Assembly: GCA_035084275.1 (NCBI GenBank)
Contig: CM068742.1
Span: forward strand, 154,566,001 to 154,630,000
Source: Hydrolagus colliei
Lineage: Eukaryota
Direction: 5' to 3'
Length of the DNA stretch: 64,000 bases
The notes beneath the pieces were generated by a model. That model made no database searches and was not told the DNA's origin. It was given only the letters and a program-made list of their open reading frames with translations. Of this stretch, positions 2,518 through 63,642 are shown one piece after another. Every line of letters begins with the position of its first letter. Position 1 is the first letter of the stretch. The translations under genes and the position numbers were made by a program.

Positions 2518-5500
2518 ATGATGCTGGGAGCTGTGCTCTGTGCCCTGGTCCTGTCAGCCTCTGCCTATCGTACGTACTTTCCAATCAGTAACTATAATAA
2601 CTGCTCACACACGATTGTCACCTCAATGCTCGATTCCGGCAACTCCCTCCTTGTCGTCCTCCTCAACTCTTCCCTCCACAAGCTGCAGATAATCCCAAAC
2701 TTTGCTGATCGTGTCCTCTTCCACACCAGGTTCTGCAACCCTATCACTCCCACCCTTGTCCGGATCCACTGAGGAGGTCTCAGAGGATTGAATTCCACAT
2801 TCACATACTCATGTACAAGACTCCCCACCTTCCTACCTCGCTGACCTGCTGATCCCCTCTCCACCTATCTGCTCTCTCCATTCAGCAAGCTCCGGCCTTC
2901 TCCATGTATCCCATCTGACCCGCCCTTCCAACTTTGGTGGGCTTGCAGACCCTCTGCTCCTATGCTTTTTGGAACTCAATTGAATAATCCCTTCACCTTG
3001 CTTCCTAACATGCCTCGTTCAAGGCTGGTCTCAAGTCCTTCCTTTTTAATTGTCCCTTAAGCTGCTATCCTATCTCATGCCAACCCTGGCCACCCAACCC
3101 ACCTCCCCCATACTTGAGTCCTGACCCCTGACTGTTCAGCGCCTTGGGACGTCCTCCTAACATGAAAGGCGCTCTACACAGGTGGTTGTTGTGGTTGTTT
3201 ACCTTTTAGTGGCATGATTACATGTGTAATGATTACAAGTGTGTGTTTGTTAACTCTGCCTCCGTTTGATTTCCCCAATCTCTCTCTGTCTTGTCTGTGT
3301 TACTTTTCGCTTGCCACTGGAGCTCTTTACTCCAAACTGATTCCCATTTTTATAGTACACCCAGACCACAACAGCGTTTTTCTTTCCACAAGCCACCTAT
3401 AATAACCCCTCCTACTTGTCACTCCCCTTCCCCCTCACTCTTAATATGCCTGCTCTTCAAACATCTATCCAATTCACTTTGATAGACTTGACGGATGATG
3501 CATGAAATCCAGTTTGTGGCAGATAATTCCACAATTCCACCCATTCTGTGTAAAGACAGGAAAACCAAAGTGTTTCCTTGTTAACTCTCTGCTTCTACTT
3601 TACCTGATTTAAGCTCCTCATAATTCCTTTTTTGAGATTGTATTAGATGTGTTCTTCTTGAGACTGTCTGCCTGATCTATTTCCGGATCTGCTAAAATTT
3701 GTTGCTATTTCCCCTGTTGTGATCTGTTGTGATATCTGGTCGCCCCAAACCTTCTCCGTTCTTCAGCCACCAATCTCTCAAATCTCTCTTCAGATCTGAA
3801 ACCCCTCATCTCTGGGAATGTGCCAATAAACTAGCATTTTGTTTTCCATTGCTGTTATATCGTTCTTACAGGGAATCCCAAACTGTCTCCCAGCTGTGGC
3901 CAAACCAAGCTCTTGTCCAAGCTCAGTGTTGCCTGTTTGCTTTTATATTGTGTTCACATTACACCATGTGTGTCCTCACAGGGCTCAGTAAGAGTAACTG
4001 GACAATGGAGACCCCTGATACAGTGACCGGCAGGTTAGGGTCACCAGTCATCATGTACTGCAAGTTCACTCACCCTCACCCCAGATACACAGGCAACATC
4101 ACCATCATGTGGAAGGGAGGCAGGAGAGGTCCTGTGTATTTTAAATATACAAACTATAGGCCAGATTCACAGGGAAAGTATCAAAATGTCATTGATGCAA
4201 ACGAGAGAGATCGATATCGAGTGATTGGGAACCCGAGGAGGAACGACGCTACAATACAGATAAACCAGCTGAGGGGAGAGGACAATAATAAGAATTTCAC
4301 CTGTCGTGTGGAGCTCCAGGATGAGGATGGAAAGTTTGAAACTGGCCCCAGAACACGTCTGTATGTTACTGGTGAGGAACGGTGGGAAGTGGGAATGAGA
4401 CGTGATGATCCTCACTGGTGCCGGAGACATATTGTGAGGGTATAGATGTGTGGAACTCTCACTGGTTTAGATATTCTTAACAATGATGACAGATTTCTCC
4501 ATGTATAACGCAAATGTCTGCCCAAATACAAGAGATTTTCTCCTTGGGTCATCACCAAAAATCCTCCATGTTTATCAGACAATGATTTGATAACCATTGA
4601 GATCTTTGATCTGAGAAAACTGACTACAAAAGTGTCACTATATTTATAGTAACCAATAGAAATAATTATTGTTGGTCATATTACATCTGATTACATTTTC
4701 TTGATATGCAGATCAATAGAATACTCTATAAAGTGAATTGACTGTATATTTTGGTGGCAAAATATGGTAGCCAATTGCATACAGCAGTTTCCCATAGATG
4801 CTCGTGGATTGAGTAACCAAAGCTTTGTTTAAGGGATTATTACCAAGCAAAGAAATATGCCAATCAAAGAAAATAATGGTTTCCTATGTACCCAGAGGTA
4901 AACAGACGTGTGTGGACAAAGGAAAATTACCCAAGGTTTCTCCCTACGCATGAATGAAGCTCAGGTTCTCTATTTTATGAGGCAAATGTGCTAAGTTGCA
5001 AGACTTATCAGAAAGAAGGTTGTTGGCGCTATTAAAAGCCAAAGTTTAATTTGTGAGACATTGCTGCCCACAATCTCAGAGAGGGTGAGTGAGGAGCACA
5101 GGCCTGAGGGAGATAGTGCCATGAAAAGCAGGAATATACAGGATGTGTAACATGTACTATGTCACACTGACTGCTCTGCACTATTCCAATCCTGTTCCTG
5201 TCTCAGGTCAAGAAGAGAAGCTCCCGTCAGTGACTGATACCAAGGGAGGTGATGCCACACTGCCCTGCTCCTTCACCAGGCCCAACACATACCAGAATCG
5301 TGCCACAGTCACAGTGATTTGGAGGAGAGGGAGGCCACAAGGGCAGGCAATTTCTAATGACACTCTTGACCTCGCCGCCCGCTCCAACCTGAGGGAGTCA
5401 GAGACAGTGAATGAAGGAAATCGCTATAACCTGGTCGGGAATGTGAGGGATGGAGACGCTTCCCTGAGGATCAGGGACCTGGAGTTAAACGACACCAACC

Positions 5501-8500
5501 GGTATTTCTGTCACGTACACGTCATGTTTATGTATGACAATCAACAACTGGACCATGTGACACAGGACACATCACGGCTGCTGGTTGTTGGTAAGAAATC
5601 TCTTGTCTCTGTGGGACATGGAAAGGGGTAAATGTCAATGTTCACGGGCGCATCATTACCGACTAGGTTTGTCTCATTCCTTACCCTGTGCCTCACGTGT
5701 TAATTAGCACAAGAAACATGTTATGAAACAGCAGAACCTTTTCCCTGGGGGGAGGGATTCTTCTCACTTGCCTCCCGTTAACACTGCAGCCAAAGTTAGG
5801 GTGATCCTAGCTGGACAAGCAGCCGGTATCTTGCCAATGACATGTGACGTAGTTGTCACAAGATCACAGGATTGGTCTGAATGAAGAAACCCCATCTAAT
5901 CTTATCCTTACTGAACCCCCCAATCACCCCCTAATCCCTACCAACCCCTCGCCCCCCAATACATTGGTATCAAGCGGAGTCTAAAAGTCTGTAATTGCTC
6001 TGTCTGAAGTGAAATTGGATAGATACGTAAAAAGGAAACCGAAACATGGGGATCTGGGGTAAGAGCGGGACAGGGCAACTAGTTGGTAGTTCCTGTAGCT
6101 TGGAGCACTTGCTGTGCAAGCCAGAGGACCTGTGAAGTGCTTTGAGTCGTGGAGATAATTAAATGCAATTATTATTATCATTACTAGTGATGATAGAAGT
6201 AGCAGTAAATACAAGGATGATTATATATTACAGCTCTTTCAAAGAACCGGTTACAGAGATGATGTTGCAAATGGCCTTCTTCCTGCTATAAGATTCTATG
6301 ATATTAAAATGGAAATATTAAATATTTGGAGATAAACATTATAAACAAAACGAAAATGTACAAGAAAAAAGCAGGCATTGAGATTAGAGCAGAAAACAAC
6401 AACAAAAAAATTACATTTGTATAGTGTCTTTCATAATGACGGGCCATCTGAAGAACACCAGTGAGTAAGCGAGTACCAGCGGGTATGATGTTGAAAGTAA
6501 TTTAATTGGAATAACTCTGTGTTTCTTTATACCCAAAGCTCCGGCCGTCATCCTGACTATGTCCCTCGTGGCCGGTGATGGAGCCGGAGGTGGCATCGTG
6601 TGCACGGCTGAGGGGGAACCACCAGCCACCATCACATGGAACGACCCCCAGAATAACACGCTGCCCATCAACACCAGCCTCACACCAGTCACACACGTAC
6701 CATACACACATCTAACCGTGGGGGAGATCTGGGGCCTGAGGCTGAGGGGAACATATCGCTGTGTAGCTGAGAACACACAGGGCAGCGACACCCGAGACAT
6801 CCTCGTCACTGCCCTACAGAGTGATGTGGACAGGGAGAGTGATGGGGACAGCGAGAGTAATGGGGACAGTAATTTGTATGTCAGGGTCTCCATTGTGGTG
6901 CTGCTTGTTCTGCTGACTGCCTTCATTGTCTGGTGGGTAAAGAGAGGTAGGTGTTTACAGACAGATGTAGTGATTATGTGGATTTGTGGATTCCTGTAGC
7001 TCAGTGGTCACTGAGTATTTGACTTACAAACATGAGACCTGCGTTCAATTACAGGCAGGGTGAAACATTTGCCAAGTTTCCTTATTCCACACGCCTGATA
7101 ATAATCACTCAAATAATCAATAATAAATTGGTCATTTCAATCTATGCATGTTTGTGGGATTTTGCTATGTGCAAGTGGCTGCCTCATTTGGCCCACAAAT
7201 ATACAGTACAGGCAATTCACTTTACAGTATATTCTGTGAAGCACTTTGAGACTTCTAGAAGATGTGAAAAGCGCTATCTCAAATGCAAGGATTATTATTA
7301 TTATTATTATTCCAAGTGAGTCCAGCTCAGCCACTCGCGCCCTCACCTCTGACTCAGCAAATATTCTGCCATATACACACACTTGGCAACCACATAATAA
7401 TAATAATAATCCTTGCATTTGATATAGCGCTGACTGTATATTTGTGGGCAAATCGCAGCAGCCAATTGCACACAACAGCGTCCCGACAAACAGTCGTGGA
7501 TTGAAATGACCCATTTTATTATCGTAGTTTTTATGGACGGATTATTATTAGGTGTGGAGTAAGGAAACTTGCCCGAGTTTTCGCCCTGACCTGCCTGGAT
7601 TCAAACACTGGTCTCCCCAACTTGGTCTCCCCAGCTTGCAAGACAAGTGCTCTAACCACTGAGCCACAGGAGCTCCACCTGGTTAAGAATAAGCAGAAGG
7701 AGAAGAAGAAAAATTCTTGCATTTGATATTGCCAACCGGTGGTATATCTGTTCAGTAACCATAGTTACAGCACACAATAGGAAGAGAACAGTTTGCCACA
7801 AGTCTTTCACTGGAATAACGTACACACTTACCAAACCAGCAAAACATCTAAAGCAATATCAAATGAAATAATGATTATTATGATGATTATTATCTCTCCC
7901 CTTGCTTTCGTCTCTTCAGGTGTCAGAGTTTTCCGCCAGCGTTCAGAGAGGTGAGTGTGTCTTTCTAATGCCTTTTACTTTCCATTGACATTCAAGTTGC
8001 AAAAGGCTATTGAGCACCATGTCTGGCAAGCTTCCTGCTTCTCTCTCCAGCTACGACCACCCTACCCATTGGGGCTTTGGCTTGCAGGGTTAATAGGATG
8101 AGTATGAGGATTCCCTGACACCAGTGGCTGGTCTTCCCTTCCAATTCTTGCCAATGAGTAGACTGGCTTTGCTGTCACCAGCAGTGCCCTAGAATATTAG
8201 ATACTCACCTGGCTCAGGAACAAGACTGAAGACCCACAGATTGTTGGCTTGAATCTGACAATCTGTTTCCAAGCATGTCACCTTGGAGCCAGAGAAGCCA
8301 AGGAAACACCGTGTAGCTTAATCTAGACAAACACCATGCACACAATCCTGTGGCCAAGCTGAGGCTTGGACTCTTCAGACAAGAGCTTTTGCCCTATGTT
8401 CTATGCCAACAATCACCTCAGTAAACCAATGATAGTTTGTGTGGAAGTTGTTGCATGAGCATTGGCTGATGTCATTCTCATCAAATGCAAAGTCATTACA

Positions 8501-11500
8501 CTTTACAGTAAATCCTGTGAAGTGCTATAAGACGTCCTCCTGATGTGAAAGACATGGTATCAAATGTGAGGATTATTAACGATAAGGTTTTATCTTCCAT
8601 CCTCTATAAAATGTAAAATGTTTTCTCTTTATTTTTTAGTTGTCAAATGGATTTGGTTGTTGACAATGACTTGGTTCAACCTCAGCTGCCTACAGGAGAC
8701 GGTAACTGTTTTGCCTCGATTAGCGTCAATTTTCACCCCATACTTTCACTAACCCGGGCTGGGTCTCAGCTTTGCTCAGCCAGTGACACTCTCACCTCTG
8801 GCACTGGGTGTCTGACCTTCAAATCCCTCCACTCCTCTGCACCCCCCTACCTGTCTAAACTCCTCTCTCCTCGAACCAGTTCCCGTTGCCTTCGCTTCAT
8901 GTCCCGTGAATCCTCCGCTCCACCCTCGGTGGCTGTGCCTGCAGCCACTATGCCCCAAGGCTCTGGAATTCCCTTCCTCACTCCCTTCATCTTGCCCCTT
9001 CTTTTCTCAGTTTCAGGTCCCATCTGAAGACCTTTCTCTTCGACCGTGCCTTTGGTCACCTTTCTCCTGCCCCTGGCTCGGTTCCGGGGTCCACTATTGT
9101 GAAGTACTCTGAGATGCCGTCCGTCGTGGAGGGCCCAATATAAATCAAAGTTGTTGTTGTTGTTGTACTCTATATACTGTACGATTTTGTTTTTTGTTGT
9201 TGGGAGGGCATCCTTGAAGTGCAGTGTTAGAAAAGAGAAAGGAGTTTCTCTGGGTGTCCAGATTAAATTGTTTATTTACTTCATGGCTCTTTGTGGGTCC
9301 ATATTGATTATTGCATTCGACAACAATAACAGTTGCCTGTCGGCCTCTCAGCCGACAGGCAACTGCCTTCCCTTTACTGGCTCACATGCCAGCACTCTAA
9401 CCTCTCAGTTAACCTCTCTGGGTCCAAGTGACAAATTAGATCCTTCCACTGACAAACATCTAGTCTAACACACCAGGGCATTGCTGGAGGAGAAGTACAT
9501 TGGCTTGCTTAAGATGAGAGATTAAACTGAGATCCCATCAATGCCTGTTGAGGAAGATGTTAAAGATCCAGTGGCTCAATTGGAAAACAAAAACCCCCGA
9601 GTGCAGACAAAATTGGTCATTCATTTCACAGTTGTTTATGAGATGTTGCTGGGTGCAAATTGGATGCCGTGTATACCAATAAATACACAGTCACTACACT
9701 TCATGGTAGCATTTGACAGTAGAAAGTGATGGGCATTAAAATACATTGACACATGAAGAAACTGAAAGCCAATGGGAAAAGTGGAGTTGGACTAAAGGGA
9801 GAGTGTTTCAGAGCCTCACAGGCATCAATGGCCTCCAACTTGGCATAAATGTTCTACTGGTATAAACAGGGCTGTAATAAGAGGGGAGCATTAGGGTCTG
9901 TCATGGGATGGCTGAGAGGGACTTTATAGAGGCTGCTGCTGCCCAGGGATATGGTAGAATGTGGCAAAGGGGAAGCTGAAGAGGGATGGAGAAGGTGCTG
10001 ACTGTTGTGTCTCTGACAGATGAAGCTGCTGTGATCTACAGCGAGGTTACCCCAGCACTGGCCAGGCAAACAGCTTCAGGTAAGAAATGTATCACACAGG
10101 GACAGATCTGGCATTGTCTCACCTCTCAACCGACCTTCTCTCTCCTGTCTGGGGTTAATTATCAGGCTGGCTCAGTTGGAAATACTCACAGTTAGATGGT
10201 TGTGGATTCAACATCCAAATTGGGTCTTTTACATATAATCTACATGAGGAACTCCACATTACCAGAGGCATCGTCCATCAGGCCCTGTTCAGGTGGATGA
10301 TAAATATCCTGTGGTACAACAACAACAATAAAATTAAACACAAAATACAACAGATGCTGCGAATCTGAAACAAAAACAAATGACATTGTATAGCGCCTTT
10401 CATGTTGGGACATCCTCCTGATGTGAAAGCCGCTGCACTATTAATACTAGTATAGCGGAGGAGGGTCTCCCCTCCAAAATCCACAAGAGTCCAGCTCATT
10501 CATAACTCTGCTGCCCGATTTCTCACCTGCACCAAACTTCGCTCCCCCATTACCCCAGTCCTTGCCAGACTTCACTGGCTCTCTATCCCAGAGAGGATCT
10601 ATTCAAGATCTTCACACTTGTCTTCAAATCCCTCCACTCATCTGCATCTCCCTATCTCTCTGACCTCCTCTCTCCCCAAACCAGTTCCCATTGCCTTTGC
10701 TCCACAAGATCTGGCCTCCTCCATGTCCCGTGAATCCTCCGCTCCACCCTCGACGGCCGTGCCTTCAGCCGCTATAGCCCAAGGCTCTGGAATTCCCTTC
10801 CTCACTCCCTTAGCCTCGCCCCCTTTTTTCTCAGCTTCAGGCCCCAGCTGAAGACCTTTCTCTTCGACTGTGCCTTTGGTCACCTTTTTACTGGCCCTGG
10901 CTCGGTCCCGGGATCCACTATTGTGAATTGCTCTGAGATGCCGTCCGTCGTGCAGGGCCCAATATAAATCAAAGTTGTTGTTGTTGTTGTACTATATATA
11001 CTGTACAATTTTGTTTTTTGTTGTTGGGAGGGCATCCTTGAAGTGTAGTGTTAGAAAAGAGAAAGGAGTTTCTCTGGGTGTCCAGATTAAATTGTTTATT
11101 TACTTCATGGCTCTTTGTGGGTCCATATTGATTGTCGCATTCGACAACAATAACAGCAACAACAATAAAATTACATATGTGTGGCGCCTTTAATGTCAGG
11201 AGGACATCCCATGGTGCTGGACAGTTACTGCTTCAGACCTGAGCAGAGCACAGGTCTGGGCGGGGGGGAAGGAGTTGTCGGTGAGTCTATCGAAGAGGAG
11301 ATTCTTGAATCGAGACTTGAAAGAGTACAGTCGGGGGGGCGAGGTGGAGGAGCTTCGGGATGGAGTTCCAGAGGTTGGGGTTAGAGTGATTGAAGGCTCA
11401 ACAAATCCAGTCGCAACATAACACAGTGAATCCTGTCAAATGCTATCAGATGTACTACGATATGTTTTGACAATGTGATCGCACCACTTTGCTGTGTCCT

Positions 11501-12485
11501 TCAAATGTGAAATACATAATAAATTAGTGTTGCTGTTGTTATTAAATCAAATGGAATAATATCCAGCCCCTCGGGCCTGGCATGTGGTTCCAATTCCCAG
11601 TTCACTGTTCATTCCTTGAACACTTTGTCCCAGCTTTGGGGACTGGGCTTCAGACATTAAAGCCATATCTCTGGACTTCCACATACACAGCACATACACA
11701 CTCCATTTGATAACTAGTGTCATATTTCCTTTGTGAAGCCGATTTCCAATTGCTAATTATTTACCAACATTGTCTGTCTTTCCTTCAGACGTGTAAGGAA
11801 ATTCTACCATCAGAACCGTCGATGAGAGTGAGTGTTGTCTACCTTTTCTGGTTTATTGTTTATCCTGTCTCTTCTCCGCTCGCACTCTGGCTTTGGGTCA
11901 GGAGGAGGGGTATTGGAGCCTCTACGTTGGGGAATTTGAGGTCACACAGTCCAGGCTGATGCTCCAGTGCAGCAATGGGGAGAGCGCTGCATTGTCAGAA
12001 GTGCTGTCCTTTGAATACGATATTAAACTGAGATCATGTCCGTGTCTGATGAATTTGTTTTGGTCAGCCACGTGCAGAAACACATCTGTTTGTCAAGAGG
12101 ATCAACACTTGACTGAGAGTTCCTGTCACCTGTACATCTGGAATGCAATGTGCTGTTGAGAAGGGAATTTCTCTCTCCTTGTGTCCTGGCCATCATTGTT
12201 TCAAATAAAATTGGTCGCTCACTTCGTGGCTATTTGTTGGACATTTCAAACTCAAATTGGGCACCAGGTTTGTTGGTAAAATACACATTCACTACAATGG
12301 ACTGTTTTCTTTGAGATATATGGACTTTATATTAATATGAGGGTTCTAATGACTTTACCCAGGACACACAGTGTATCACAGCTCTCAGCAAGTGGAGGTA
12401 CATGTCCTGATTCCATTTTGTTTCTCTTCTAGATGTGATTTATGCTGTCGTCGCCAAATCGAAGAGGAGCTCAGCTGAGCAGTGA
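2518..12485 (+). CDS. SIGLEC15-like: Siglec-15-like receptor A1 (leader-V-V-C2-TM-ITIM tail), multi-exon gene
   Basis: Exons with GT-AG and consistent phase: 2518-2569 (leader MMLGAVLCALVLSASAY), 3982-4371 (V1), 5207-5590 (V2), 6539-6946 (C2+stalk+TM), 7920-7950, 8640-8701, 10020-10079 (VIYSEV ITIM), 11789-11827 (in-frame TAA 11794-11796), 12433-12485 (VIYAVV ITIM, TGA). About 464 aa to the TAA, or 479 aa if exon 8 is skipped. Motifs FTHPH, GNPRRND, CRVE and CTAEGEPP match Siglec-15 as I recall it. Confidence 0.85.
2592..3200 (+). mobile_element. L2 3'-end fragment in intron 1
   Basis: YNNCSH...LLVGLP..SLHKLQ.IPN; in B2 it continues HWLPVPQRIKFKIL. Ends in a ttgttg tail. Copies at about 20207-20815, 33183-33800, 38029-38635, 51005-51625 and 56100-56695. 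Confidence 0.75.
3982..4371 (+). CDS. A1 exon 2: N-terminal V-set Ig domain with Siglec essential Arg (CRVE)
   Basis: Acceptor tcctcacag, donor gtgagg, 390 nt, phase 1-1. B-strand Cys (MYCKF), C-strand Trp and F-strand Cys-Arg are present. Confidence 0.92.
5207..5590 (+). CDS. A1 exon 3: second V-set Ig domain (no essential Arg)
   Basis: Acceptor ctgtctcag, donor gtaaga, 384 nt. Motifs LPCSF, VIW, DASLRI and DTNRYFCHV. Confidence 0.92.
6539..6946 (+). CDS. A1 exon 4: C2-set Ig domain + acidic stalk + transmembrane helix
   Basis: Acceptor tacccaaag, donor gtaggt. CTAEGEPP...TYRCVAEN, then hydrophobic VSIVVLLVLLTAFIVWWV followed by KR. Confidence 0.92.
6996..7311 (+). mobile_element. tRNA-derived SINE with (ATT)n tail in intron 4
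   Basis: gtagctcagtgg A-box, gttcaatt B-box, caaatgcaaggattattatt tail. Copies start at 24654, 42474 and 60527. Confidence 0.8.
7394..7668 (-). mobile_element. tRNA-derived SINE, opposite orientation
   Basis: Reverse complement of the same family, with an (AAT)n tail at the left and gtggctcagtggttagagcac at the right. Copy at about 25046-25386. Confidence 0.8.
8817..11156 (+). repeat. ~520-bp direct repeats (8817-9332 and 10622-11156) flanking ITIM exon 7
   Basis: Both copies consist of an L2 3' fragment, a (TTG)n tail and a near-identical non-L2 stretch ending at cgacaacaataacag. Confidence 0.85.
10020..10079 (+). CDS. A1 cytoplasmic exon 7 encoding ITIM (VIYSEV)
   Basis: Acceptor tctctgacag, donor gtaaga, 60 nt, phase 1-1. 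Reads DEAAVIYSEVTPALARQTAS. Confidence 0.85.
12433..12485 (+). CDS. A1 terminal exon encoding second ITIM (VIYAVV)
   Basis: Acceptor tctcttctag. Reads VIYAVVAKSKRSSAEQ* in phase 1 and is conserved in A2 (28327-28379) and A3 (46148-46200). Confidence 0.8.
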
Positions 12486-50930: not shown

Positions 50931-53900
50931 ATGATGCTGGGAGCTGTGCTCTGTGTCCTGGTCCTGTCAGCCTCTGCCTTACGTACGTACTTTCCAATCA
51001 GTAACTATAATAACTGCTCACACGCGATTGTCACCTCAATGCTCGACTCCGGCAACTCCCTCCTTGTCGGCCTCCCCAACTCTTCCCTCCACAAGCTGCA
51101 GATAATCCCAAACTTTGCACCTCGTGTCCTCTCCCACACCAGACTGCGCGACCCTGTCACCCCCACCCTCGCCCTGGTCCACTGGCTGCCTGTCCCTCAG
51201 AGAATCAAATTCAAGATCTTGATACTCACATTCATGTCCCTCCACCCTCCTACCTCTCTGACCAGCAGATTCCCTATCAACCTACCTGTCCTTCCATTCA
51301 GCAGGCTCCAGCCTTCTCCATGTCTCCCACCCGACCCTCCCTTCCATCTTTGATGGGCTTTCAGGCTCTCTGCTCCAATTCTTTACGGTTCTATCACACA
51401 ATCCCTTTGTCTTGCTTCCTCCCTTGCCTCCTTCAATGCCAGTGTCAAGATCCTCCTTTTTGAGTGTCCCTTCAGCCGCCTTCCTATCTCTCTGGCCGCT
51501 TTCATCACAAACCTGCACCTACTCCACCACCTCGCCTATGCTTGGGTCCTGGCACCTGACTGGTCAACGCCTTGGGACATCCACCCAACATGAAAGGCGA
51601 TCCATAAATATAGTTGTTGTTGTCGTATCTCTTTAGTGGCATGATTACAGAGACAGGTGACATCTGTAAATAATGTTTTTGTCTTTAATGTTGACAGATC
51701 TGCCGCTGAGTGAGTCACTCACTGAGCCTCACAGGGCAAGTGTGTATTTGTTCATTCTGCTTCCATTTGATTTTCCAAACCTCTCTCTGTCTTGTCTTGT
51801 CTGTCCGTCTTCACTCCCCACTGATTCCCAAGGGATGGTACAAATTACCCCCAACGCATATTCTGCGATCCACAATATTTTCGTTTCCTCTTACATCAGA
51901 TGCCTGGGTGACAACAAATTATGGTATTTTTATAATACAATAGACCACAAGAGCGTTTTTCTTTCCACAAGCCACCCATTCTAATCCCTCTGTCCAGTCA
52001 CTTCCGATTCCCTACACCCTTAATATTGCTCCTCTTCAAACATCTATCCAATTCCCTTTGATAGACTTGATGGATGATGTCTTGAATCCAGTTTGTGGCA
52101 GATAATTCCACAATTCCATCCTGTGTAAAGACCAAAGTGTTTGCTTGTTAACTCTCTGCCTCTACTTTATCTGTTTTAAGCTCCTCATAGTTCCTCTTTT
52201 GTGATAGTATTAGATCTGTTCCTATTGCGATATCAGTGAAAATATATTGCTATTTCCCCTGTTCCTTGACCACATCACACCCTCTCTGCCCCCACACTCT
52301 GGAAATCCATCCCTCATCCAATTCACCTTGCTTCCTGTTTCCTCCTTCAAGGCTGGTATCAAAACCTTCCGCTTTGACCGTGCCTTCTGCTGCCCACCTA
52401 ACTATCACCACTTTCCAACTCACCATCCCCCTATCCCTACCCCGACCCTTCCCCCCCCCTGCTCGGGTCCCGACCTAACTGTTGAGTGCCTTGGACGTGG
52501 AAAGAGCTCTGAAAATGTAATTTTGTTGTTGTTGTGACTTGTTCTGACCTCTATCTGGTCGCCCCAAACCTTCTCAATTTGTGAGCCACCAATCTGTCAA
52601 ATCTCTCTTCGGATATGAAACTAATCATCTCTGTGGACTTGCCAACACACTAGGATGCATCTTTTCCATTTTTTAAAATAATGTTCCTCTAGGGATCCCC
52701 AAATTGTCTACATTAATCCCAGCTGTGACCTAACCAAGCTCTTGTCCAAGCTCAGTGTTGCCTGTTTGCTTTTATATTGTGTTCTGGTTCACATTACACC
52801 ACTTTGGTGAGGCCTCAGCTGGAATACTGTCTTCAATTCTGGTCACCACACTACAGAAAGGATGTGAAGACATTGGAAAGGGTACAAAGAAGATTTACTA
52901 GGATGGTGCCAGGATTGAGGGACTTCAGCTATGAGGAGAGGCTAGATAGGCTAGGGTTATTCTCTCTGGAGCAGAGAAGATTGAGGGGAGACCTAATAGA
53001 GGTTCATAAGATCATGAGGGGTTTCGACAGGGCAAATAGAGAAAAACTATTTCCACTCCTGGGCGAATCTGTGACTCGTGGTCACAGATTTAAAATAGTT
53101 TCAAGGCAAAGTAGAGGGGAGCTGAGGAGAAATGTTTTCACTCAGCGAGTTGTTCGAATCTGGAATGGATTGCCTGAAAAGGTGTGAATGGCTGGACAAT
53201 GGAGACCCTGATACAGTGACCGGCAGGTTAGGGTCACCAGTCATCATGTACTGCAAGTTCACTCACCCTCACCCCAGATACACAGGCAACATCACCATCA
53301 GGTGGAAGGGAGGCTGGGCTGGTCCTGTGTATTTTAAATATACAAACTATAGGCCAGATTCACAGGGAAAGTATCAAAATGTCATTGATGTAAACGAGGG
53401 AGATCGACACCGAGTGATTGGGAAACTGAGGAGGAACGACGCTACAATACAGATAAACCAGCTGAGGGGAGAGGACAATAATAAGACTTTCTCCTGTTCA
53501 ACTGTCAACTGTTCAAAAGTTCAACTGCCGTGTGGAGCTCCAGAGTGAGGGCAGACAGCTTGAAACTGGCCCCAGATACATGTCTGTATGTTACAGGTGA
53601 GGAACGATAGGAAGTGGGAATGAGACGTGATGATCCTCACTGGTGCCGGAGTCAGTGGGAAGTGTCTCGCCCAGGACGGGCAATAGGGAGCGAGTGTTCC
53701 CAGTGAAGGAAGGTGTGTAACAGGGGCTGGCAGGGACAGTGAGTGAGCGGCTGATGGGAGGGAGGGCTGTGCTGTACACTGACCTGTCACTGTGGGAATG
53801 TCTATTTGCCAAGGCTCCTCACATGTGTGTAACATGTACTGTGTCACACTGACTGCGCTTCAGTATTCCAATCCTGTTCCTGTCTCAGGTCATGAAGAGA

Positions 53901-55041
53901 AGCTCCCGTCAGTGATTGGTACCAAGGGAGGTGATGCCACACTGCCCTGCTCCTTCACCAGGCCCAACACACACCAGAATCCTGCCACAGTCACAGTGAT
54001 TTGGAGGAGAGGGAGGCCACAAGGGCAGCCGGTTACTAATGACACTGTTGACCTCACCTCCCGCTCCAACCCCAGGGAGTCAGAGACAGTGAATGAAGGA
54101 AATCGCTATAACCTGGTCGGGAATGTGAGGGATGGAGACGCTTCCCTGAGGATCAGGGACCTGGAGTTAAACGACACCAACCGGTATTTCTGTAACGTAC
54201 ACGTCATGTTTATCCTTAACAGACAACAACAGGACCAGATGACACAGGACTTATGACACGGATACAGGTTTTTGGTAAGAAATCTCTTGTCACTGCGGGT
54301 CACTGAATTGGGTAAATAAACAGGTCAATGTTCACTTGGTTTTAACAACGTTAAGTTTGTTTAATTCCATATTCTGCTTCTCATGTGTTAATTAGCACAC
54401 AGAATATATTCGGAATGAGCAGAAACTTTAGTTGATACAGGAGACAGTGTTTCTTCCCTCTCGTCTGATGTTGACTGGCTAGTCAAAGCCTTAACAATTA
54501 GACTCACTTTTACCACCGCATTTCCTACCCTACTCTCTTCCTGATCCCAAATTCCAGCTTTGGTGGTGGTGGAAATCCTGATTTGGGAATTCCACCCCGT
54601 GTGAAAGCCACGCTACAAATGTGATTGTTTATTGTGGCTTAAAGTAGCAGGAAGCTTGCCATGGGGTGTGTACAAGATTACGGAATGACAAGATTGGTCT
54701 GGGCGATGAAAGCCCATCTGATGTGAAAAGCGTTAAACAAATGTAACTCTGTTGTTGTTGTTCATCTCATCTTTGCAAAACACACACCTACTGTCCACGC
54801 ATCGCATCATCAAGTTGCTTTGTAAATGAATCCAGTGTCCTGGCCTCAAATACCCTTCCTGGCAACCTGATCCAGTTGTGCGAGTGTGCAACAATGGGGA
54901 GAGAATGACTGGGATCAGAGTGGAGAGCTCCAGTGGGGAGTGAGCACAGACATGATGCGGAAATATATTTGGTAACAATAACTCTGTTTCTTTATATCCA
55001 AAGCTCCGGCCTTCATCCTGACTCTGTCTCTCGTGGCTGGT
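50931..55041 (+). pseudogene. Siglec-15-like pseudogene B3
   Basis: Leader 50931-50982. V1 53182-53596 frameshifted. V2 53889-54274 with TGA 54254-54256. Exon 4 fragment 55004-55041. Confidence 0.85.
52802..53183 (+). mobile_element. CR1 LINE fragment (copy in B3)
   Basis: Same sequence and junctions as 34977-35358. Confidence 0.92.
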
Positions 55042-55779: not shown

Positions 55780-58700
55780 ATGATGCTGGGAGCTGTGCTC
55801 TGTGCCCTGGTCCTGTCAGCCTCTGCCTTACGTACGTACTTTCCAATCAGTAACTATAATTAATAATAATAATCAATAATAATAATCCATCCAAAAAAAA
55901 CCCACAATAATAAAATTGGTGATTCACTCCACGACTGTTGGTTGGACACTGCTGTGCATAATTGGCTGCCGGGATTTGCCCACAAATATATAGTCAATTC
56001 ACTTTACAGTATATTCTGTGAAGCGCTTTGGGACGTAGATAAGATGTGAAAAGCGCTGTATCAAATGCAAGGATTATTATTATTATTATAATAATAAATG
56101 CTCACACGCGATTGTCACCTCAATGTTCGGCTCCGGCAACTCCCTCCTGGTCGGCCTCCCCAACTCTTCCCTCCACAAGCTGCAGATAATCCCAAACTTT
56201 GCACCTCGTGTCCTCTCCCACACCAGGCTCTGTGACCCTATCACTCCCACCCTCGCCCGTATCCAGTGAGGAGATCTCAGAGGATTGAATTCCAGATTCA
56301 CATACTCATGTACAAGACTCCCCACCCTCCTACCTCGCTGACCTGCTGATCCCCTCTCCACCTATCTGCTCTCTCCATTCAGCAAGCTCCGGCCTTCTCC
56401 ATGTATCCCGCCTGACCCGCTCTTCCAACTTTGGTGGGCGTGCAGACCCTCTGCTCCTATGCTTCTTGGAACTCAATTGAATAATCCCTTCACCTTGCTT
56501 CCTTACATGCCTCGTTCAAGGCTGGTCTCAAGCCCTTCCTTTTTGACTGTCCCTTCAGCTGCTATCCTGTCTCATGCCAACCCTGGCCACCCAACCCACC
56601 TCCCCCATACTTGAGTCCTGACTCCTGACTGTTCAGCGCCTTGGGACGTCCTCCCAACATGAAAGGCGCTCTACACATGTGGTTGTTGTGGTTGTTTATC
56701 TTTTAGTGGCATGATTACATGTGTAATGATTACAAGTGTGTGTTTGTTAACTCTGCCTCCGTTTGATTTCCCCAATCTCTGTCTTGTCTGTGTTACTTTT
56801 CACTTGCCACTGGAGCTCTTTACTCTAAACTGATTCCCAAGTGTCAGTGCTAGTTAAACCGTATCAGTTACCCCCAAACCACATTCTGGGGTCCTCTTGT
56901 ATCAGACACCTGGGTGACAACAAATGGTGGTATTTTTATATTACACCCAGACCACAACAGCGTTTTTCTTTCCACAAGCCACCCATAGTAACCCCTCTGA
57001 CCTGTCACTCTCCTTCCCCCTCACTCTTAATATGCCTCCTCTTCTATCCAATTCTCTTTGATAGACTTGACGGATGATGCATGAAATCCAGTTTGTGGCA
57101 CATAATTCCACAAATCCACCCATTCTGTGTAAAGACAGGAAAACCAAAGTGTTTCCTTGTTAACTCTGCTTCTACTTTACCTGTTTAAGATCCTCATAAT
57201 TCCTTTTTTGAGATGGTGTTAGATGTGTTCTTCTTGAGACTGTCTGTCTGGTCTATTTCCAGATCTGCTAGAATTTGTTGCTATTTCCCCTGTTGTGATC
57301 TGTTGTGATATCTGGTCGCTCCACACCTTCTCCGTTCTTCAGCCACCAATCTCTCAAATCTCTCTTCAGATCTGAAACCCCTCATCTCTGGGAATGTGCC
57401 AATAAACTAGCAATTTGTTTTCCATTGCTGTTATTTCGTTCTTACAGAGAATCCCAAACTGTCTCAAAATTCCAAACCAAGCTCTTGTCCAAGCTCAGTG
57501 TTGCCTGTTTGCTTTTATATTGTGTTCTGGTTCACATTACACCATGTGTGTCCTCACAGGGATCAGTGTGAATGGCTGGACAATGGAGATCCCTGATACA
57601 GTGACTGGCAGGTTAGGGTCACCAGTCATCACGTACTGCAAGTTCACTCACCCTCACCCCAGATACACAGGTAACATCACCATCATGTGGAAGGGAGGCT
57701 GGGCTGGTCCTGTGTATTTTAATTATACAAACTATAGGCCAGATTCACAGGGAAAGTATCAAAATGTCATTGATGTAAACGAGAGAGATCGATATCGAGT
57801 GATTTGGAACCCGAGGAGGAACGACGCTACAATACAGATAACGCAGCTGAGGGGAGAGGACAATAATAAGAATTTCTCCTGTCGTGTGGAGCTCCAGGGT
57901 GAGGATGGAAAGTTTGAAACTGGCCCCAGAACACGTCTGTATGTTACAGGTGAGGAAAGATGAAGTGGGAATGAGACGTGATGATCCTCACTGGTGCCGG
58001 AGACATATTGTGAGGGTAATTATGTATGGAACTCTCACTGGTTTAGATATTCTTAACAATGGTGACAGATTTCTCCATGTATAAGGCAAATGTCTGCCCA
58101 AATACAAGAGATTTTCTCCTTGGGTCATCACCAAAAATCCTCCATGTTTATCAGTCAATCATTTCATAACCATTGAGATCTTTGATCTGAGTAAAGTGAC
58201 TGCAAAAGTGTCACTATATTTATAGTAACAAATAAAAATAATTATTCTAGTTCATATTACATCTGATTACATTTTCTTGATATACAGATCAATAGAATAC
58301 TCTATCAAGTGAATTGACTGTATATTTTTTTGGCAAAATATGGTAGACAATTGCACACAGCAGTTTCCCATAGATGCTCGTGGATTGAGTAACCAAAGCT
58401 TTGTTTAAGGGATTATTACCAAGCAAAGAAATACGCCAATCAAAGAAAACAATGGTTTCCTATGTAGCCTTAGGTAAACAGACATGTGTGGACAAAGGAA
58501 AATTACCCAAAGTTTTTCCCTACCCATGAATCAAGCTCAGGTGCTCTATATTATGAGGCAAGTGTGCTAAGCTACAAGACTGATCAGTAAGAAGGTTGTT
58601 GGCGCTATTAAAAGCCAAAGTTTAATTAGTGAGACATTGCTGCCCACAATCTCAGAGAGGGTGAGTGAGGAGCACAGGCCTGAGGGAGATAGTGCCATGA

Positions 58701-61700
58701 AAAGCAGGAATATACAGGATGTGTAACATGTACTGTGTCTCACTGACTGCTCTGCACTATTCCAATCCTGTTCCTGTCTCAGGTCATGAAGAGAAGCTCC
58801 CGTCAGTGACTGGTACCAAGGGAGGTGATGCCACACTGCCCTGCTCCTTCACCAGGCCCAACACACACCAGAATCGTGCCAGAGTCACAGTGATTTGGAG
58901 GAGAGGGAGGCCACAAGGGCAGCCAGTTTCTAATGACACTCTTGACCTCACCGCTCGCTCCAACCCCAGGGAGTCAGAGACAGTGAATGAAGGAAATCGC
59001 TATAACCTGGTTGGGAATGTGAGGGATGGAGACGGTTCCCTGAGGATCAAGGACCTGGAGTTAAACAACAACGACCAATATTTCTGTCACGTACACGTCA
59101 TGTTTATCAATAAGGAAAAACAACTGGACCATGTGACACAGGACACATCACGGCTGCTGGTTGTTGGTAAGAAATCTCTTGTCTCTGTGGGACATGGAAA
59201 GGGGTAAATGTCAATGTTCACGGGCGCATCATTACAGACTAGGTTTGTCTCATTCCTTACCCTGTGCCTCACGTGTTAATTAGCACAAGAAACATGTTAT
59301 GAAACAGCGGAACCTTTTCCCTGGGGGGAGGGATTCTTCTCACTTGCCTCCCGTTAACACTGCAGCCAAAGTTAGGGTGATCCTAGCTGGACAAGCAGCC
59401 GGTATCTTGCCAATGACATGTGACGTAGTTGTCACAAGATCACAGGATTGGTCTGAATGAAGAAACCACATCTAATCTTATCCTTACTGAACCCCCCAAT
59501 CACCCCCTAATCCCTACCAACCCCTCGCCCCCCAATACATTGGTATCAAGCGGAGTCTAAAAGTCTGTAATTGCTCTGCCTGAAGGGAAATTGGATAGAT
59601 ACGTAAACAGGAAACATTTTCAGGGCTCTGGGGTAAGAGTGGGATAGAATGACTATTTGAGAGATCCTGTGGCTTGGAGCACTTGCCGTACAAGCCCGAG
59701 GACCTGGGTTAGATTTTTGCGCTGGGGAAACCATTGTGGGCAAACTTCCTTACTCCAAACACGTGTTTACCCAGGAATGAGTGTGAATCCAGCTGTTAGT
59801 TCATTGGCAGGTAATTTTCTGGGGTAATAATAGCTTAAAGAGAAAAGAAAAAAGCAGGCAATGAGATTAGAGCATAAAACTAACAACAGCAAAATTACAT
59901 TTGTATAGTATCTTTTATGTTGGGGGGCCATCTGAAGAACACCAGTGAGTAAGCGAGTACCAGCGGATATGACGGGAAAATTTATTTATTCAGAATAACT
60001 CTGTGTTTCTTTATACCCAAAGCTCCGGCCGTCATCCTGACTATGTCCCTCGTGGCCAGTGATGGAGCCGGAGGTGGCATCATGTGCACGGCTGAGGGGG
60101 AACCACCAGCCACCATCACATGGATCGACCCCCAGAATAACACGCTGCCCGTCAACACCCACATGTCAATCACACATATACCAGACATGTATCTAACCTT
60201 GGGGGAAATCTGGGACCTGAGGCTGTGGGGAACTTACCGCTGTGTAGCTGAGAACACACAGGGCAGTGACACCCGAGACATCCTCGTCACTGCCCTACAG
60301 AATGATGTGGACAAGGAGAGTGACAGGGACAAGGAGAGACACAGGGACAAGGAGAGTGACGGGGACAAGGAGAGTGATGGGGACAGCGAGAGTAATGGGG
60401 ACAGTAATTTACATATCAAGGTCCCCATTGTGGTGCTGGTTGTTCTGCTGATTGCCTTCATTGTCCATTGGGTAAAGAGAGGTAGGTGTTTACAGATGTA
60501 ATGATTATGTGGATTTGTGGATTCCTGTAGCTCAGTGGTCACTGAGTATTCGACTTACAAACATGAGACCTGCGTTCAATTCCAGGCAGGGTGAAACATT
60601 TGCCAAGTTTCCTTATTCCACCCGCCTGATAATAATCACTCAAATAATCAATAATAAATTGGTCATTTCAATCCATGTCTGTTTGTGGGATTTTGCTATG
60701 TGCAAGTGGCTGCCTCATTTAGCCCACAAATATACAGTACAGACAATTCACTTTACAGTATATTCTGTGAAGCACTTTGAGACTTCTAGGAGATGTGAAA
60801 AGCGCTATCTCAAATGCAAGGATTATTATTATTATTCCAAATGAGTCTAGCACAGCCAATCGCTCCCTCATCTCTGACTCAGCAAATATTCTGCCATATA
60901 CACACACTTGGCAACCACATCATCATCATCATCATCGTAATAATAAACCTTGTATTTGGTATAGCGCTGTTCACATCTTATCGACGTCTCAAAGCGCTTC
61001 ACTGAATATACTGTAAAGTGAATTGACTGTATATTTGTGAGCAAATCGCAGCAGCCAATTGCGCACAGCAGTGTCCCCACAAACAGTCGTGGATTGAAAT
61101 GACCCATTTTATTATCGTGGTTTTTTCGGACGGATTAGCATTAGGTTGGAGTAAGGAAACTTGCTGAAGATTTTGCCCTGACCTGCCTGGATTCGAACAC
61201 AGGTCTCTCCAGCTTGGTCTCCTTAGCTTGCAAGACAAGTGCTCTAACCACTCAGCCACAGGAGCTCCACCTGGTTAATAATAAGCAGAAGGAGACGAAG
61301 AAAAATTCTTGCATTTGGTATTGCCAGCCGGTGGTATATCTGGCTTCCTGTTTAGTAACCATAGTTACATAACACAATAGGAAGAGAACAGTTTGCCACA
61401 AGCCTTTCACTGGAATAACGTACACACTTACCAAACCAGCAAAACATCTAAAGCAATATCAAGTGAAATAATGATTATTATGATGATTATTATCTCTCCC
61501 CTTGCTTTCGTCTCTTCAGGTGTCAGAGTTTTCCGCCAGCGTTCAGAGAGGTGAGTGTGTCTTTCTAATGCCTTTTACTTTCCATTGACATTCAAGTTGC
61601 AAAAGGCTATTGAGCACCATGTCTGGCAAGCTTCCTGCTTCTCTCTCCAGCTACGACCACCCTACCAATTGGAGCTTTGGCTTGCAGGGTTAATAGGATG

Positions 61701-63642
61701 AGTATGAGGATTCCCTGACACCAGTGGCTGGTCTTCCCTTCCAATTCTTGCCAATGAGTAGACTGGCTTTGCTGTCACCAGCAGTGCCCTATAATATTAG
61801 ATACTCACCTGGCTCAGGAACAAGACTGAAGACCCACAGATTGTTGGCTTGAATCTGACATTCTGTTTCCAAGCATGTCACCTTGGAGCCAGAGAAGCCA
61901 AGGAAACACCGTGTAGCTTAATCTAGACAAACACCATGCACACAATCCTGTGGCCAAGCTGAGGCTTGGACTCTTCAGACAAGAGCTTTTGCCCTGTGTT
62001 CTATGCCAACAATCACCTCAGTAAACCAATGATAGTTTGTGTGGAAGTTGTTACATGAGCATTGGCTGATGTCATTCTCATCAAATACAAAGTCATTACA
62101 CTTTACAGTAAATCCTGTGAAGTGCTATAAGACGTCCTCCTGATGTGAAAGACATGGTATCAAATGTGAGGATTATTAACGATGAGGTTTATCTTCCATC
62201 CTCTATAAAATGTAAAACATAAAATATAAAATGTTTTCTCTTTATTTTTTAGTCGTCAAATGGATTTGGTTGTTGACAACGATTTGGTTCACCCTCAGCT
62301 GCCTACATGAGACGGTAACTGTTTTCTCTCGATTACCGATGGCACAATTTTCACCCCGTGCTTTCACTAACCCAGGGCTGTGTCTCAGCTTTGCTCAGTC
62401 AGTGACACTCTCACCTCTGGCTCTGGGTGTCTTACCTTCAAATCCCTCCACTCCTCTGCACCCCCCCTACCTGTCTAAACTCCTCTCTCCTCAAACCAGT
62501 TCCCGTTGCCTTCGCTCCACTGGGTCTGGCCTGCTTCATGTCCCGTGAATCCTCCGCTCCACCCTCGGTGGCTGTGCCTGCAGCCACTATGCCCCAAGGC
62601 TCTGGAACTCCCTTCCTCACTCCCTTCATCTTGCCCCTTCTTTTCTCAGTTTCAGGTCCCATCTGAAGACCTTTCTCTTCGACCGTGCCTTTGGTCACCT
62701 TTCTCCTGCCCCTGGCTCGGTTCCGGGGTCCACTATTGTGAAGTACTCTGAGATGCCGTCCGTCGTGGAGGGCCCAATATAAATCAAAGTTGTTGTTGTT
62801 GTTGTACTATATATACTGTACGATTTTGTTTTTTGTTGTTGGGAGGGCATCCTTGAAGTGCAGTGTTAGAAAAGAGAAAGAAGTTTCTCTGGGTGTCCAG
62901 ATTAAATTGTTTATCTACTTCATGGCTCTTTGTGGGTCCATATTGATTATCGCATTCGACAACAATAACAAAAAGAACAACAAAATTACATATGTGTGGC
63001 GCCTTTCACGTCAGGAGGACATCCCATGGTGCTGGACAGTTACTGCTTCAGACCTGAGCAGAGCACAGGTCTGGGCGGGGGGGGAAGGAGTTGTCGGTGA
63101 GTCTATCGAAGAGGAGATTCTTGAATCGAGACTTGAAAGAGTACAGTCGGGGGGCGAGGCCGAGGATCTTCGGGATGGAGTTCCAGAAGTTGGGGTCAGA
63201 GTGATTGAAGGCTCAACAAATCCAGTCGCAACATAACACAGTGAATCCTGTCAAATGCTATCAGATGTACTACGATATGTTTTCTCAATGTCATAGCACC
63301 ACTTTGCTATGTCCCTCAAATGTGAAATACATAATAAATTATTGTTGCTGTTGTTATTAAATCAAATGGAATAATATCCAGCCCCCAGGGCCTGGCATGT
63401 GGTTCCAATTCCCTTTTCATTGTTCATTCCGTGAACCCTTTGTCCGAGCTTTGGGGACTGGGCTTCAGACGTTAAACCCGTATCTCTGGACTTCCACATA
63501 CACAGTACATACACACTCCATTTGATAACTAGTGTCATATTTCCTTTGTGAACCCGATTTCCAATTGCTAATTATTTACCAACATTGTCTGTCTCTCCTT
63601 CAGAAGTGTACGGAAATTCTACCATCAGAACCGTCGATGACA
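55780..63642 (+). CDS. SIGLEC15-like: Siglec-15-like receptor A4 (truncated tail; last exon beyond window)
   Basis: Exons 55780-55831, 57560-57949, 58783-59166, 60023-60481, 61520-61550, 62253-62314 (TGA 62308-62310), 63604-63642. Confidence 0.85.
55860..56097 (+). mobile_element. 5'-truncated SINE inserted only in A4 intron 1
   Basis: SINE 3' half with an (ATT)n tail, inserted at actataat^aa. Absent from A1-A3 and B2-B3. Confidence 0.75.
57560..57949 (+). CDS. A4 V-set domain 1 exon
   Basis: Open 390-nt exon, NFSCRVE...KFET. Confidence 0.9.
58783..59166 (+). CDS. A4 V-set domain 2 exon
   Basis: Open 384-nt exon with canonical splice sites. Confidence 0.9.
60023..60481 (+). CDS. A4 C2+stalk+TM exon
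   Basis: Open 459-nt exon with canonical splice sites. Confidence 0.9.

Follow-up and report, generated by a model that had tools for sequence, protein, structure and literature searches.

The window studied here, 64,000 nucleotides of contig CM068742.1 from Hydrolagus colliei, contains a tandem array of Siglec-15-like receptor genes that is made up of four intact genes (genes 1 to 4) and three pseudogenes (B1 to B3). No genes besides this receptor cluster were found in the window. We read the cluster as a birth-and-death array of a family that would derive from the Siglec-15 lineage and extend across the cartilaginous fish, where gene 1 would encode an inhibitory sialic-acid receptor and genes 2 to 4 its non-inhibitory counterparts, and we give this reading a probability of about 0.7. 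The proteins of the family are predicted to run from a signal peptide through two V-set domains (V1 and V2), a C2 domain, an acidic stalk and a transmembrane (TM) segment to a cytoplasmic tail. V1 would be the counterpart of the Siglec-15 lectin domain, with the Trp, the essential Arg and the Glu kept and an aromatic residue in genes 1 and 4, and V2 would be an old, diverged extra V-set domain that probably serves as a spacer or a secondary surface.

In gene 1, binding of a ligand by V1 would lead to the phosphorylation of two immunoreceptor tyrosine-based inhibitory motifs (ITIMs), VIYSEV and VIYAVV, then to the recruitment of SHP-1/2, and leukocyte activation would be dampened. Genes 2 to 4 would have kept intact, diversifying ectodomains and lost the inhibitory signalling through two lesions, a deletion of the VIYSEV exon and a TGA upstream of the VIYAVV exon. 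Their products would most likely be non-inhibitory counterparts, acting as decoys or adaptor-coupled receptors. Families of paired receptors usually come about in this way.

Gene structures and cytoplasmic tails

The window was searched in all six frames for the motifs that the initial annotation had named, and all of them were found in place and on the plus strand. FTHPH occurs seven times (4065, 17615, 21768, 35433, 39588, 53258, 57643), as does CRVE. GNPRRND was found four times (4227, 17777, 21930, 39750) and is varied to WNPRRND in gene 4 and to GKLRRND in B2 and B3. Four copies of CTAEGEPP (6601, 24212, 42032, 60085), three of VIYAVV (12435, 28329, 46150) and a single VIYSEV (10031) were recovered. 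A BLAST comparison of the window with itself revealed a segmental duplication in tandem, whose unit measures about 17.8 kb. The segments 17512-38035 and 35330-55860 are 99.3% identical, and the copies flanking this block are 94-97.5% identical. These results support a recent tandem expansion, as had been proposed.

Splice junctions were read directly from the window and the exons were assembled. The four leader-V-V-C2-TM genes that had been described as spliceable have GT-AG at every junction, and the immunoglobulin (Ig) exons of all four are in phase 1. Two short cytoplasmic exons, cyA (31 nt) and cyB (62 nt), were located by homology to the tails of the Callorhinchus milii models P0001 and P0022 and are additional to the exons listed in the initial annotation. 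The tail exons of gene 1 stand in the same order as in P0001 and P0022. For gene 4, the last exon is expected just past the end of the window.

The tail of gene 1 contains two canonical ITIMs, which fit [SIVL]xYxx[ILV] and are 23 residues apart from Tyr to Tyr. Genes 2 to 4 are without the VIYSEV exon and have a common in-frame TGA in cyB, 8 nt before the donor. Their default tail is 34 residues long and contains no Tyr, and this truncated form was not seen among the models of relatives that were retrieved. Such members had been called tail-less, which is inexact: a short tail is present, and it is the ITIMs that were lost through the shared TGA and the exon deletion. The proposal that signalling diversified in the cluster is borne out in so far as gene 1 has two ITIMs and the default form of genes 2 to 4 has none.

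How the VIYSEV exon was lost is suggested by a pair of direct repeats, copies of an interspersed element, which surrounds this exon in gene 1. In genes 2 to 4 there is one repeat copy, which is of the left type, and what comes after it is the sequence that is found to the right of the second copy in gene 1. Such an arrangement is typical of a deletion by recombination, and the exon was probably lost by recombination between the flanking repeats. Since the homologues in C. milii have one or two such exons, a loss in genes 2 to 4 is the simpler reading. The ITIM form (gene 1) and the ITIM-less forms (genes 2 to 4) of the window are 81-83% identical, and the proteins of genes 2 and 3 are 98.5% identical with 7 residue differences. 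The acidic stalk differs in length among the paralogues and is 18 amino acids longer in genes 2 to 4 than in gene 1.

The TM segment is YVRVSIVVLLVLLTAFIVWW in gene 1 and HVKVPIVVLVVLLIAFIVHW in genes 2 to 4, with a basic residue at the outer edge only. When four C-termini of the Lys type were used in tblastn, no match to a Lys-type TM exon was found anywhere in the window. By their sequences, all window genes are placed in the branch without the mid-membrane Lys that pairs with DAP12. The Lys or Arg at the TM edge was considered as an adaptor site and rejected; it is unconvincing because Arg stands at this position in the ITIM-bearing gene 1, and Gly or Val in C. milii.

The three damaged copies seen in the initial annotation are indeed damaged, and in the same way. 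B1 to B3 have three common frame-breaking indels in V1 (-1, +31 and +1), and no frameshifts are present in genes 2 to 4. All three have other sequence in place of the V1 acceptor and the 5' end of the exon; in B2 and B3 this sequence is the 3' end of ORF2, an open reading frame (ORF) of a long interspersed nuclear element (LINE). From its motif, the LINE fragment is putatively CR1-like. Only a 12-residue stub of C2 is left in B1 to B3, and a TM segment is absent. Since the V1 exons of these TM-less copies are frame-broken, they are pseudogenes and not candidates for soluble receptors, which had been thought possible.

Table 1. Positions of the genes, pseudogenes and repeats in the window
Feature	Position	Strand	Description
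Gene 1	2518..12485	+	479 aa, eight exons, all junctions GT-AG and in frame
Gene 1, ectodomain and TM exons			2518-2569 leader; 3982-4371 V1; 5207-5590 V2; 6539-6946 C2, acidic stalk and TM
Gene 1, tail exons			7920-7950 cyA; 8640-8701 cyB; 10020-10079 VIYSEV; 12433-12485 VIYAVV and stop
Direct repeat pair around the VIYSEV exon of gene 1	8817..11156	+	8817-9332 and 10622-11156; interspersed repeat, 89% identical
Pseudogene B1	17054..19391	+	degraded leader 17054-17101; V1 remnant 17564-17933 (-1, +31, +1); V2 18251-18607 with +2 insertion; C2 stub 19356-19391
Gene 2	20133..28379	+	457 aa
Gene 2, exons			20133-20184; 21685-22074 V1; 22910-23293 V2; 24150-24608 C2, stalk and TM; 25647-25677 cyA; 26380-26441 cyB
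Stalk repeat	24426..24530	+	18-bp tandem repeat, 5.8 copies, encodes the acidic stalk of the DGDKES type; equivalents in genes 3 and 4
Gene 2, VIYAVV exon	28327-28379	+	intact; untranslated unless cyA and cyB are skipped
Pseudogene B2	33109..37213	+	intact leader 33109-33160; V1 remnant 35382-35751, 5' end replaced by LINE tail; V2 36069-36443 open; C2 stub 37178-37213; no TM
LINE ORF2 3' end	34952..35362	+	abuts the V1 remnant of B2; motif ...LEYCLQFWSP...RGDLIEVHKIM...
Gene 3	37955..46200	+	457 aa; within the 99.3% identical duplicate block
Gene 3, exons			37955-38006; 39505-39894; 40730-41113; 41970-42428; 43467-43497; 44201-44262 (TGA as in gene 2)
Gene 3, VIYAVV exon	46148-46200	+	intact
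Pseudogene B3	50931..55041	+	leader 50931-50982; V1 remnant 53207-53576; V2 53894-54250 with +2 insertion; C2 stub 55006-55041
Second LINE ORF2 copy	52777-53187	+	precedes the V1 remnant of B3
Gene 4	55780..62314	+	457 aa up to the TGA shared with genes 2 and 3
Gene 4, exons			55780-55831; 57560-57949; 58783-59166; 60023-60481; 61520-61550; 62253-62314

A relic copy of exon 1 (MMLGAVLC...) was observed at 1869..1892 on the plus strand, roughly 650 bp 5' of the true leader, with a 1-bp deletion and no GT donor. Equivalents are present at 19475, 37297 and 55125 on the same strand, and the relic is a trace of an older duplication of the promoter and exon 1. An interspersed repeat that encodes LSC[WR]EDVPR[HP]WT[IV] was found at more than 10 sites on the minus strand, for example at 14021-14083, 17410-17451, 19817-19873 and 29773-29823. 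It matches the C-terminus of the C. milii model P0003 (LSCRENVPRHWTVQGL), whose tail is therefore repeat-derived. Three intergenic stretches (14001-18000, 30001-32000 and 48001-50000) show a strong positive GC skew of 0.24-0.32 and contain overlapping long ORFs on both strands that are repeat-derived in appearance.

Siglec-15 homology and the candidate sialic-acid site

The spliced protein was analysed with Pfam, which identified two V-set domains and an Ig/I-set domain, and custom domain models likewise gave V1-V2-C2. When the spliced gene 1 protein was compared with the PDB by phmmer, the best match was human Siglec-15 (7zoz, E 5.7e-33), followed by CD33 (4.6e-8) and Siglec-8 (2.6e-7), and the Siglec-15 match is far beyond chance. 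Among the solved structures, V2 alone also matched the Siglec-15 V domain best (E 1.4e-12), with TIM-1 next at 1.7e-8. C2 alone is a generic Ig domain and not diagnostic; its best single-domain match is Siglec-15, with an E-value of only 2e-5.

The structures of the V1 and V2 exons were predicted separately with AlphaFold and compared by Foldseek. The V1 model had a predicted local distance difference test score (pLDDT) of 90.4, and its top match was Siglec-15 (7zoz) with TM-scores of 0.86/0.89, a root-mean-square deviation of 2.1 Å and an E-value of 4.9e-11. The other 49 matches listed for the V1 fold had query-normalised TM-scores of 0.58-0.71. The V2 model was weaker (pLDDT 81.0); Siglec-15 gave the best TM-score (0.69) and the best identity (34%), yet ranked fourth by Foldseek E-value.

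In a tree of V domains with CD33 as the outgroup, three clades were found apart from CD33, which are the V domain of bony-vertebrate Siglec-15 (support 91/92), V1 of cartilaginous fish (83/85) and V2 (95/95). The three clades meet in a three-way split, and V2 may have arisen before or after the divergence from bony fish. The window genes are sister to the C. milii proteins P0001 and P0002 (100/99), with their V1 inside the holocephalan V1 clade and their V2 inside the V2 clade. Taken together, the search of the PDB, the V1 fold and the tree support the assignment of the window domains to the Siglec-15 branch, and not to the CD33-related Siglecs, PILR or TIM, as the initial annotation had placed them. 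Of the characterised proteins, Siglec-15 comes closest both in sequence and in V1 fold.

The residues that contact sialic acid were mapped by alignment to human Siglec-15, numbered as in PMC10264397. The essential R143 of strand F, which forms a salt bridge to the sialic acid (PMC10264397, PMC7226832), is kept in V1 of all four genes, where it lies in CRVEL. W44 and E155 are likewise kept in V1 of 4/4 genes. In V2 the Trp is deleted, the Arg is replaced by His and the Glu by Thr. The pair R153-Y154 corresponds to K-F in V1 of genes 1 and 4, to M-V in genes 2 and 3 and to H-V in V2. Y87 is not kept in either domain and aligns to Arg or Trp in V1. The C95-C104 disulfide is absent from V1 and V2, and in every cartilaginous-fish V1 a Tyr and an Asn are aligned with the two cysteines.

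In published accounts, Siglec-15 is a V-C2 protein with R143, a TM Lys that allows pairing with DAP12/DAP10, and no ITIM (PMC7226832; 2026 bioRxiv preprint). The bony-vertebrate proteins (human Q6ZMC9, PDB 7zoz; teleost siglec15l) are the best sequence and fold match of the window genes, and the two share W-S/T-M-x-x-P, CxFTHPH, GNPRRND and FCRVE with the essential Arg, CTAEGEPP in C2 and the conventional B-F disulfide of the V domain. Unlike Siglec-15, which is a single gene with one V and one C2 domain and a short ITIM-less tail, the window genes form a multicopy tandem array, have an extra V-set domain between V1 and C2, are without the mid-membrane Lys, lack the C95-C104 disulfide and Y87 in V1, and include, in gene 1, a tail with two ITIMs. 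Since homology, fold and the Arg agree with Siglec-15, and the number of domains, the TM Lys, the lack of ITIMs and the extra disulfide do not, the window genes are Siglec-15-like paralogues and not orthologues. The double-V genes of the Lys type described below are the better orthologue candidates.

The V exons of genes 1 and 2 were also compared. The nonsynonymous divergence (pN) of V1 was 0.087 and the synonymous divergence (pS) 0.031 (one-sided Fisher p 0.042), and pN also exceeded pS for V1 and V2 together (p 0.033). The pN of V1 is higher than the divergence of the introns, which is about 0.055. These values suggest, if weakly, a diversifying selection on the V domains.

Relatives in cartilaginous fish

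An exhaustive HMMER list was dominated by giant multi-Ig proteins; proteins of at most 1,200 residues were analysed, and name look-ups were added. A profile search of a word-indexed database was saturated with generic Ig words and contributed little. The nearest proteins of the window genes all came from cartilaginous fish. The V1-V2-C2 design was found in Callorhinchus, in the sharks Cetorhinus, Heptranchias and Heterodontus and in the rays Pristis, Mobula, Leucoraja, Amblyraja, Rhinoraja and Narcine. Combined with an ITIM-type tail and a terminal [A/V]IYAxV exon, it was observed in Callorhinchus, Heptranchias, Heterodontus, Mobula and Narcine. Since V2 forms one clade across the cartilaginous fish and ITIM-type tails occur in sharks, rays and chimaeras, both features predate the split of chimaeras from sharks and rays. 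According to the initial annotation, this expansion had acquired both the second V domain and the inhibitory tail, a view that is contradicted by the single V2 clade and by the tails of the five genera. Only the tandem amplification and the loss of ITIMs are local to the array of the window.

Two kinds of C-terminus were observed among these proteins. The first has the TM segment LIPL[IV]KFLLLL and almost no tail, and its mid-membrane Lys occupies the same alignment column as that of mammalian and teleost Siglec-15. The second kind, which is that of the window, has a TM segment ending in F.[IV]W.[LV]K[KR], ITIM-like motifs in the tail and a conserved last exon with [A/V]IYAxV. This TM segment and terminal exon were compared with P0001, P0011, P0024, P0030, P0049 and P0054, and the exon is present for genes 1 to 3. 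In Pristis, the Lys-type P0009 and the non-Lys P0011 occupy one strand as separate genes, with about 93 kb between them. The Lys-type TM segment is contiguous with C2 on one exon there, and in the window genes C2 and the TM segment likewise share an exon. The two kinds of C-terminus are therefore paralogous genes and not alternative exons. As a neighbour of the Pristis locus, only a sodium:solute symporter was seen, which is uninformative as to synteny with the SIGLEC15 locus of bony vertebrates, where the human gene order is SLC14A1-SIGLEC15-EPG5.

The Lys-TM double-V proteins (C. milii LOC103174418 and those of Cetorhinus, Pristis, Mobula hypostoma and Leucoraja 'Siglec-15') have the same ectodomain architecture as the window genes, combined with a Siglec-15-type TM segment and almost no tail, and none is encoded in the window. 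Double-V automatic models without the Lys are C. milii LOC103188801 and LOC103188796, Heptranchias perlo XP_067838218, Mobula birostris XP_072113536, Narcine bancroftii XP_069798446 and Heterodontus francisci XP_067884866. Like the window genes, these have the V1-V2-C2 design, a TM pattern without the Lys, many ITIM-like motifs in the tail and the terminal [A/V]IYAxV exon, but the window genes are only 68-78% identical to the nearest of them, from C. milii, and the elasmobranch models have much longer tails with 4-6 Tyr motifs. Identity between any C. milii protein and a window exon did not exceed 87%. Domain by domain, the ITIM and Lys paralogues of C. milii share 86-93% identity. In Pristis, identity between the two kinds is 83-86% in V2 and C2 but only 48% in V1.

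The Arg position was also inspected in the elasmobranch paralogues. The Lys-TM double-V proteins of Cetorhinus (P0007) and Pristis (P0009) have Leu at the position of R143 and no aromatic residue at 154, and the non-Lys/ITIM paralogues of Heptranchias (P0030) and Pristis (P0011) have kept the Arg and a Phe. The presumed activating, Lys-TM branch of elasmobranchs may have lost sialic-acid binding.

Multiple V domains were also seen outside the cartilaginous fish. The lungfish Protopterus annectens has Siglec-15-like proteins (P0042 and P0027) with two tandem V domains, combined with a Lys-TM, and with seven, all of the V1/bony type. V domains multiplied independently outside the cartilaginous fish. 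A pair of V domains is likewise present in the serrasalmid teleost proteins P0155 and P0169. A third Siglec-15-like lineage with a single V domain, C2, TM segment and tail was found in sharks and rays, Carcharodon, Cetorhinus and Mobula among them (P0060, P0166, P0128, P0141). The Carcharodon protein P0060 has LDYSEV in its tail, and the two members included in the V tree, P0060 and P0128, fall into none of its V1, V2 and bony Siglec-15 clades. In Pristis pectinata (CM019861.1, locus L002), the P0011 model contains an extra C2 exon with stops in its TM part and a second V2-like exon (24089-24640, 29028-29435). This model probably merges two tandem units, and the Mobula birostris model P0024 (874 aa) is likewise probably a fusion of two tandem genes.

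Automatic models of the family are present in NCBI and UniProt under inconsistent names (Siglec-15, Siglec-12, CXADR-like, uncharacterized), and our full-text literature searches brought up no publication that deals with Siglec-15 relatives in cartilaginous fish. That no description of the family was known, as first noted, thus holds for the papers searched but not for gene models. To our knowledge, no Siglec with more than one V domain has been described.

Alternative explanations and meaning

Several observations weigh against our interpretation of the array. The sialic-acid pocket is only partly conserved, with the equivalent of Y87 and the C95-C104 disulfide lost, and genes 2 and 3 have M-V in place of the K-F pair on strand G. 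Genes 2 to 4 are without an evident adaptor-pairing residue. Splicing and expression are predicted from consensus sites and from homology to the predicted models of other species. The excess of pN over pS is only marginally significant and would also be compatible with relaxed constraint. Finally, the DNA of genes 2 and 3 is 99.3% identical, so that one of them could be an assembly duplicate.

Genes 2 to 4 might be pseudogenes at an early stage, with the loss of the ITIM tail being a plain loss of function. The common nonsense codon and the exon deletion would agree with this, as would a pN/pS near or above 1, which fits relaxed constraint, and the array does yield pseudogenes in B1 to B3. In genes 2 to 4, however, the leader, V1, V2 and C2/TM exons are open and their GT-AG sites intact despite a DNA divergence of 1-7%, whereas the B copies are frameshifted. 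With the TGA located 8 nt upstream of the final exon junction, nonsense-mediated decay is not expected, and the pN of V1 is above the divergence of the introns. Loss of ITIMs by truncation is, moreover, a classic origin of activating or decoy partners in paired-receptor families. We consider a pseudogene state of genes 2 to 4 unlikely, but it deserves serious attention. Genes 2 to 4 could also make an inhibitory isoform by skipping cyA and cyB. The TM exon (phase 1) would then be joined in frame to the VIYAVV exon, giving ...HWVKR-DVIYAVVAKSKRSLAEQ, and genes 2 and 3 have an undamaged VIYAVV exon with its AG acceptor. Such skipping is improbable, since cyA and cyB have undamaged splice sites that match those of gene 1 exactly, and the VIYAVV exon may simply not have decayed yet.

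A further question concerns the ligand. The receptors might no longer bind sialic acid and instead recognise a protein or a pathogen by a remodelled V1/V2 surface. The missing Y87 and loop disulfide and the variation of the strand-G contacts between the paralogues point in this direction, and the Leu of the elasmobranch Lys-type relatives indicates that the family tolerates loss of the Arg. For zebrafish Siglec-15, binding to the glycans tested was poor, as summarised in PMC7226832 from Angata 2007. The equivalents of R143, W44 and E155 are, however, invariant in the four intact V1 domains, which otherwise change fast, and a complete change of ligand seems rather unlikely to us. That the number of copies is inflated, with the 17.8-kb units (B1 and gene 2 versus B2 and gene 3) being an assembly duplication or two haplotypes, would agree with the 99.3% identity over 20.5 kb and the 7 residue differences between genes 2 and 3. 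The window, however, contains no gaps and no N, and the units differ by indels, as the +2 insertion in V2 is present in B1 and B3 and not in B2, and the leader of B1 is different and degraded. Gene 4 (97.5%) and gene 1 (94%) are clearly distinct, and an artefact of the assembly is quite improbable. Least of all do we expect the window genes to be straightforward Siglec-15 orthologues that act as DAP12-coupled activating receptors. Siglec-15 is their closest characterised protein in sequence and fold, and some NCBI names of the relatives imply orthology. Against this, which makes it very improbable, stand the lack of a mid-membrane Lys and of a Lys-type TM exon in the window, the extra V domain, the ITIMs of gene 1 and the separate Lys-TM double-V genes in the same genomes (P0002 in C. 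milii, P0009 beside P0011 in Pristis).

With gene 1 read as an inhibitory receptor and genes 2 to 4 as its non-inhibitory counterparts, the array resembles the paired CD33-related Siglecs (Siglec-5/14, Siglec-11/16), KIR, LILR and PILR. Like these, it is a tandem birth-and-death cluster in which similar ectodomains, alike within a species, are placed on inhibitory or non-inhibitory ends, with the ITIM lost by truncation. Unlike the CD33-related Siglecs, the window genes belong to another Siglec branch by their matches (CD33 E 4.6e-8 versus 5.7e-33), and their V1 has the conventional two-Cys pattern. The ITIM-less members also differ from those of paired receptors in having no demonstrated activating adaptor site.

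The interest of these results is comparative and evolutionary and not mechanistically new, and the gene models are already public. Fish have been described as having only the four conserved Siglecs, Siglec-15 included (PMC7226832; 2026 bioRxiv preprint). We propose tentatively, with somewhat less than even confidence, that in cartilaginous fish the Siglec-15 lineage, and not the CD33-related one, supplies a fast-evolving set of inhibitory and non-inhibitory sialic-acid receptors with a unique multi-V ectodomain. The inhibitory branch would keep the sialic-acid Arg, and the DAP12-type branch would have lost it, as judged from the two elasmobranch members that were aligned. The window would then capture an inhibitory gene turning into ITIM-less partners. 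If this is true, the picture of Siglec-15 as conserved, single-copy and activating would hold only for bony vertebrates. In the oldest lineage of jawed vertebrates, the Siglec-15 branch, as seen at this locus and in its relatives, has two or more V domains, multigene arrays and ITIM members beside Lys-type members. In conclusion, the family would offer a system to ask how inhibitory recognition of self sialic acid is organised in fish and how paired receptors arise.

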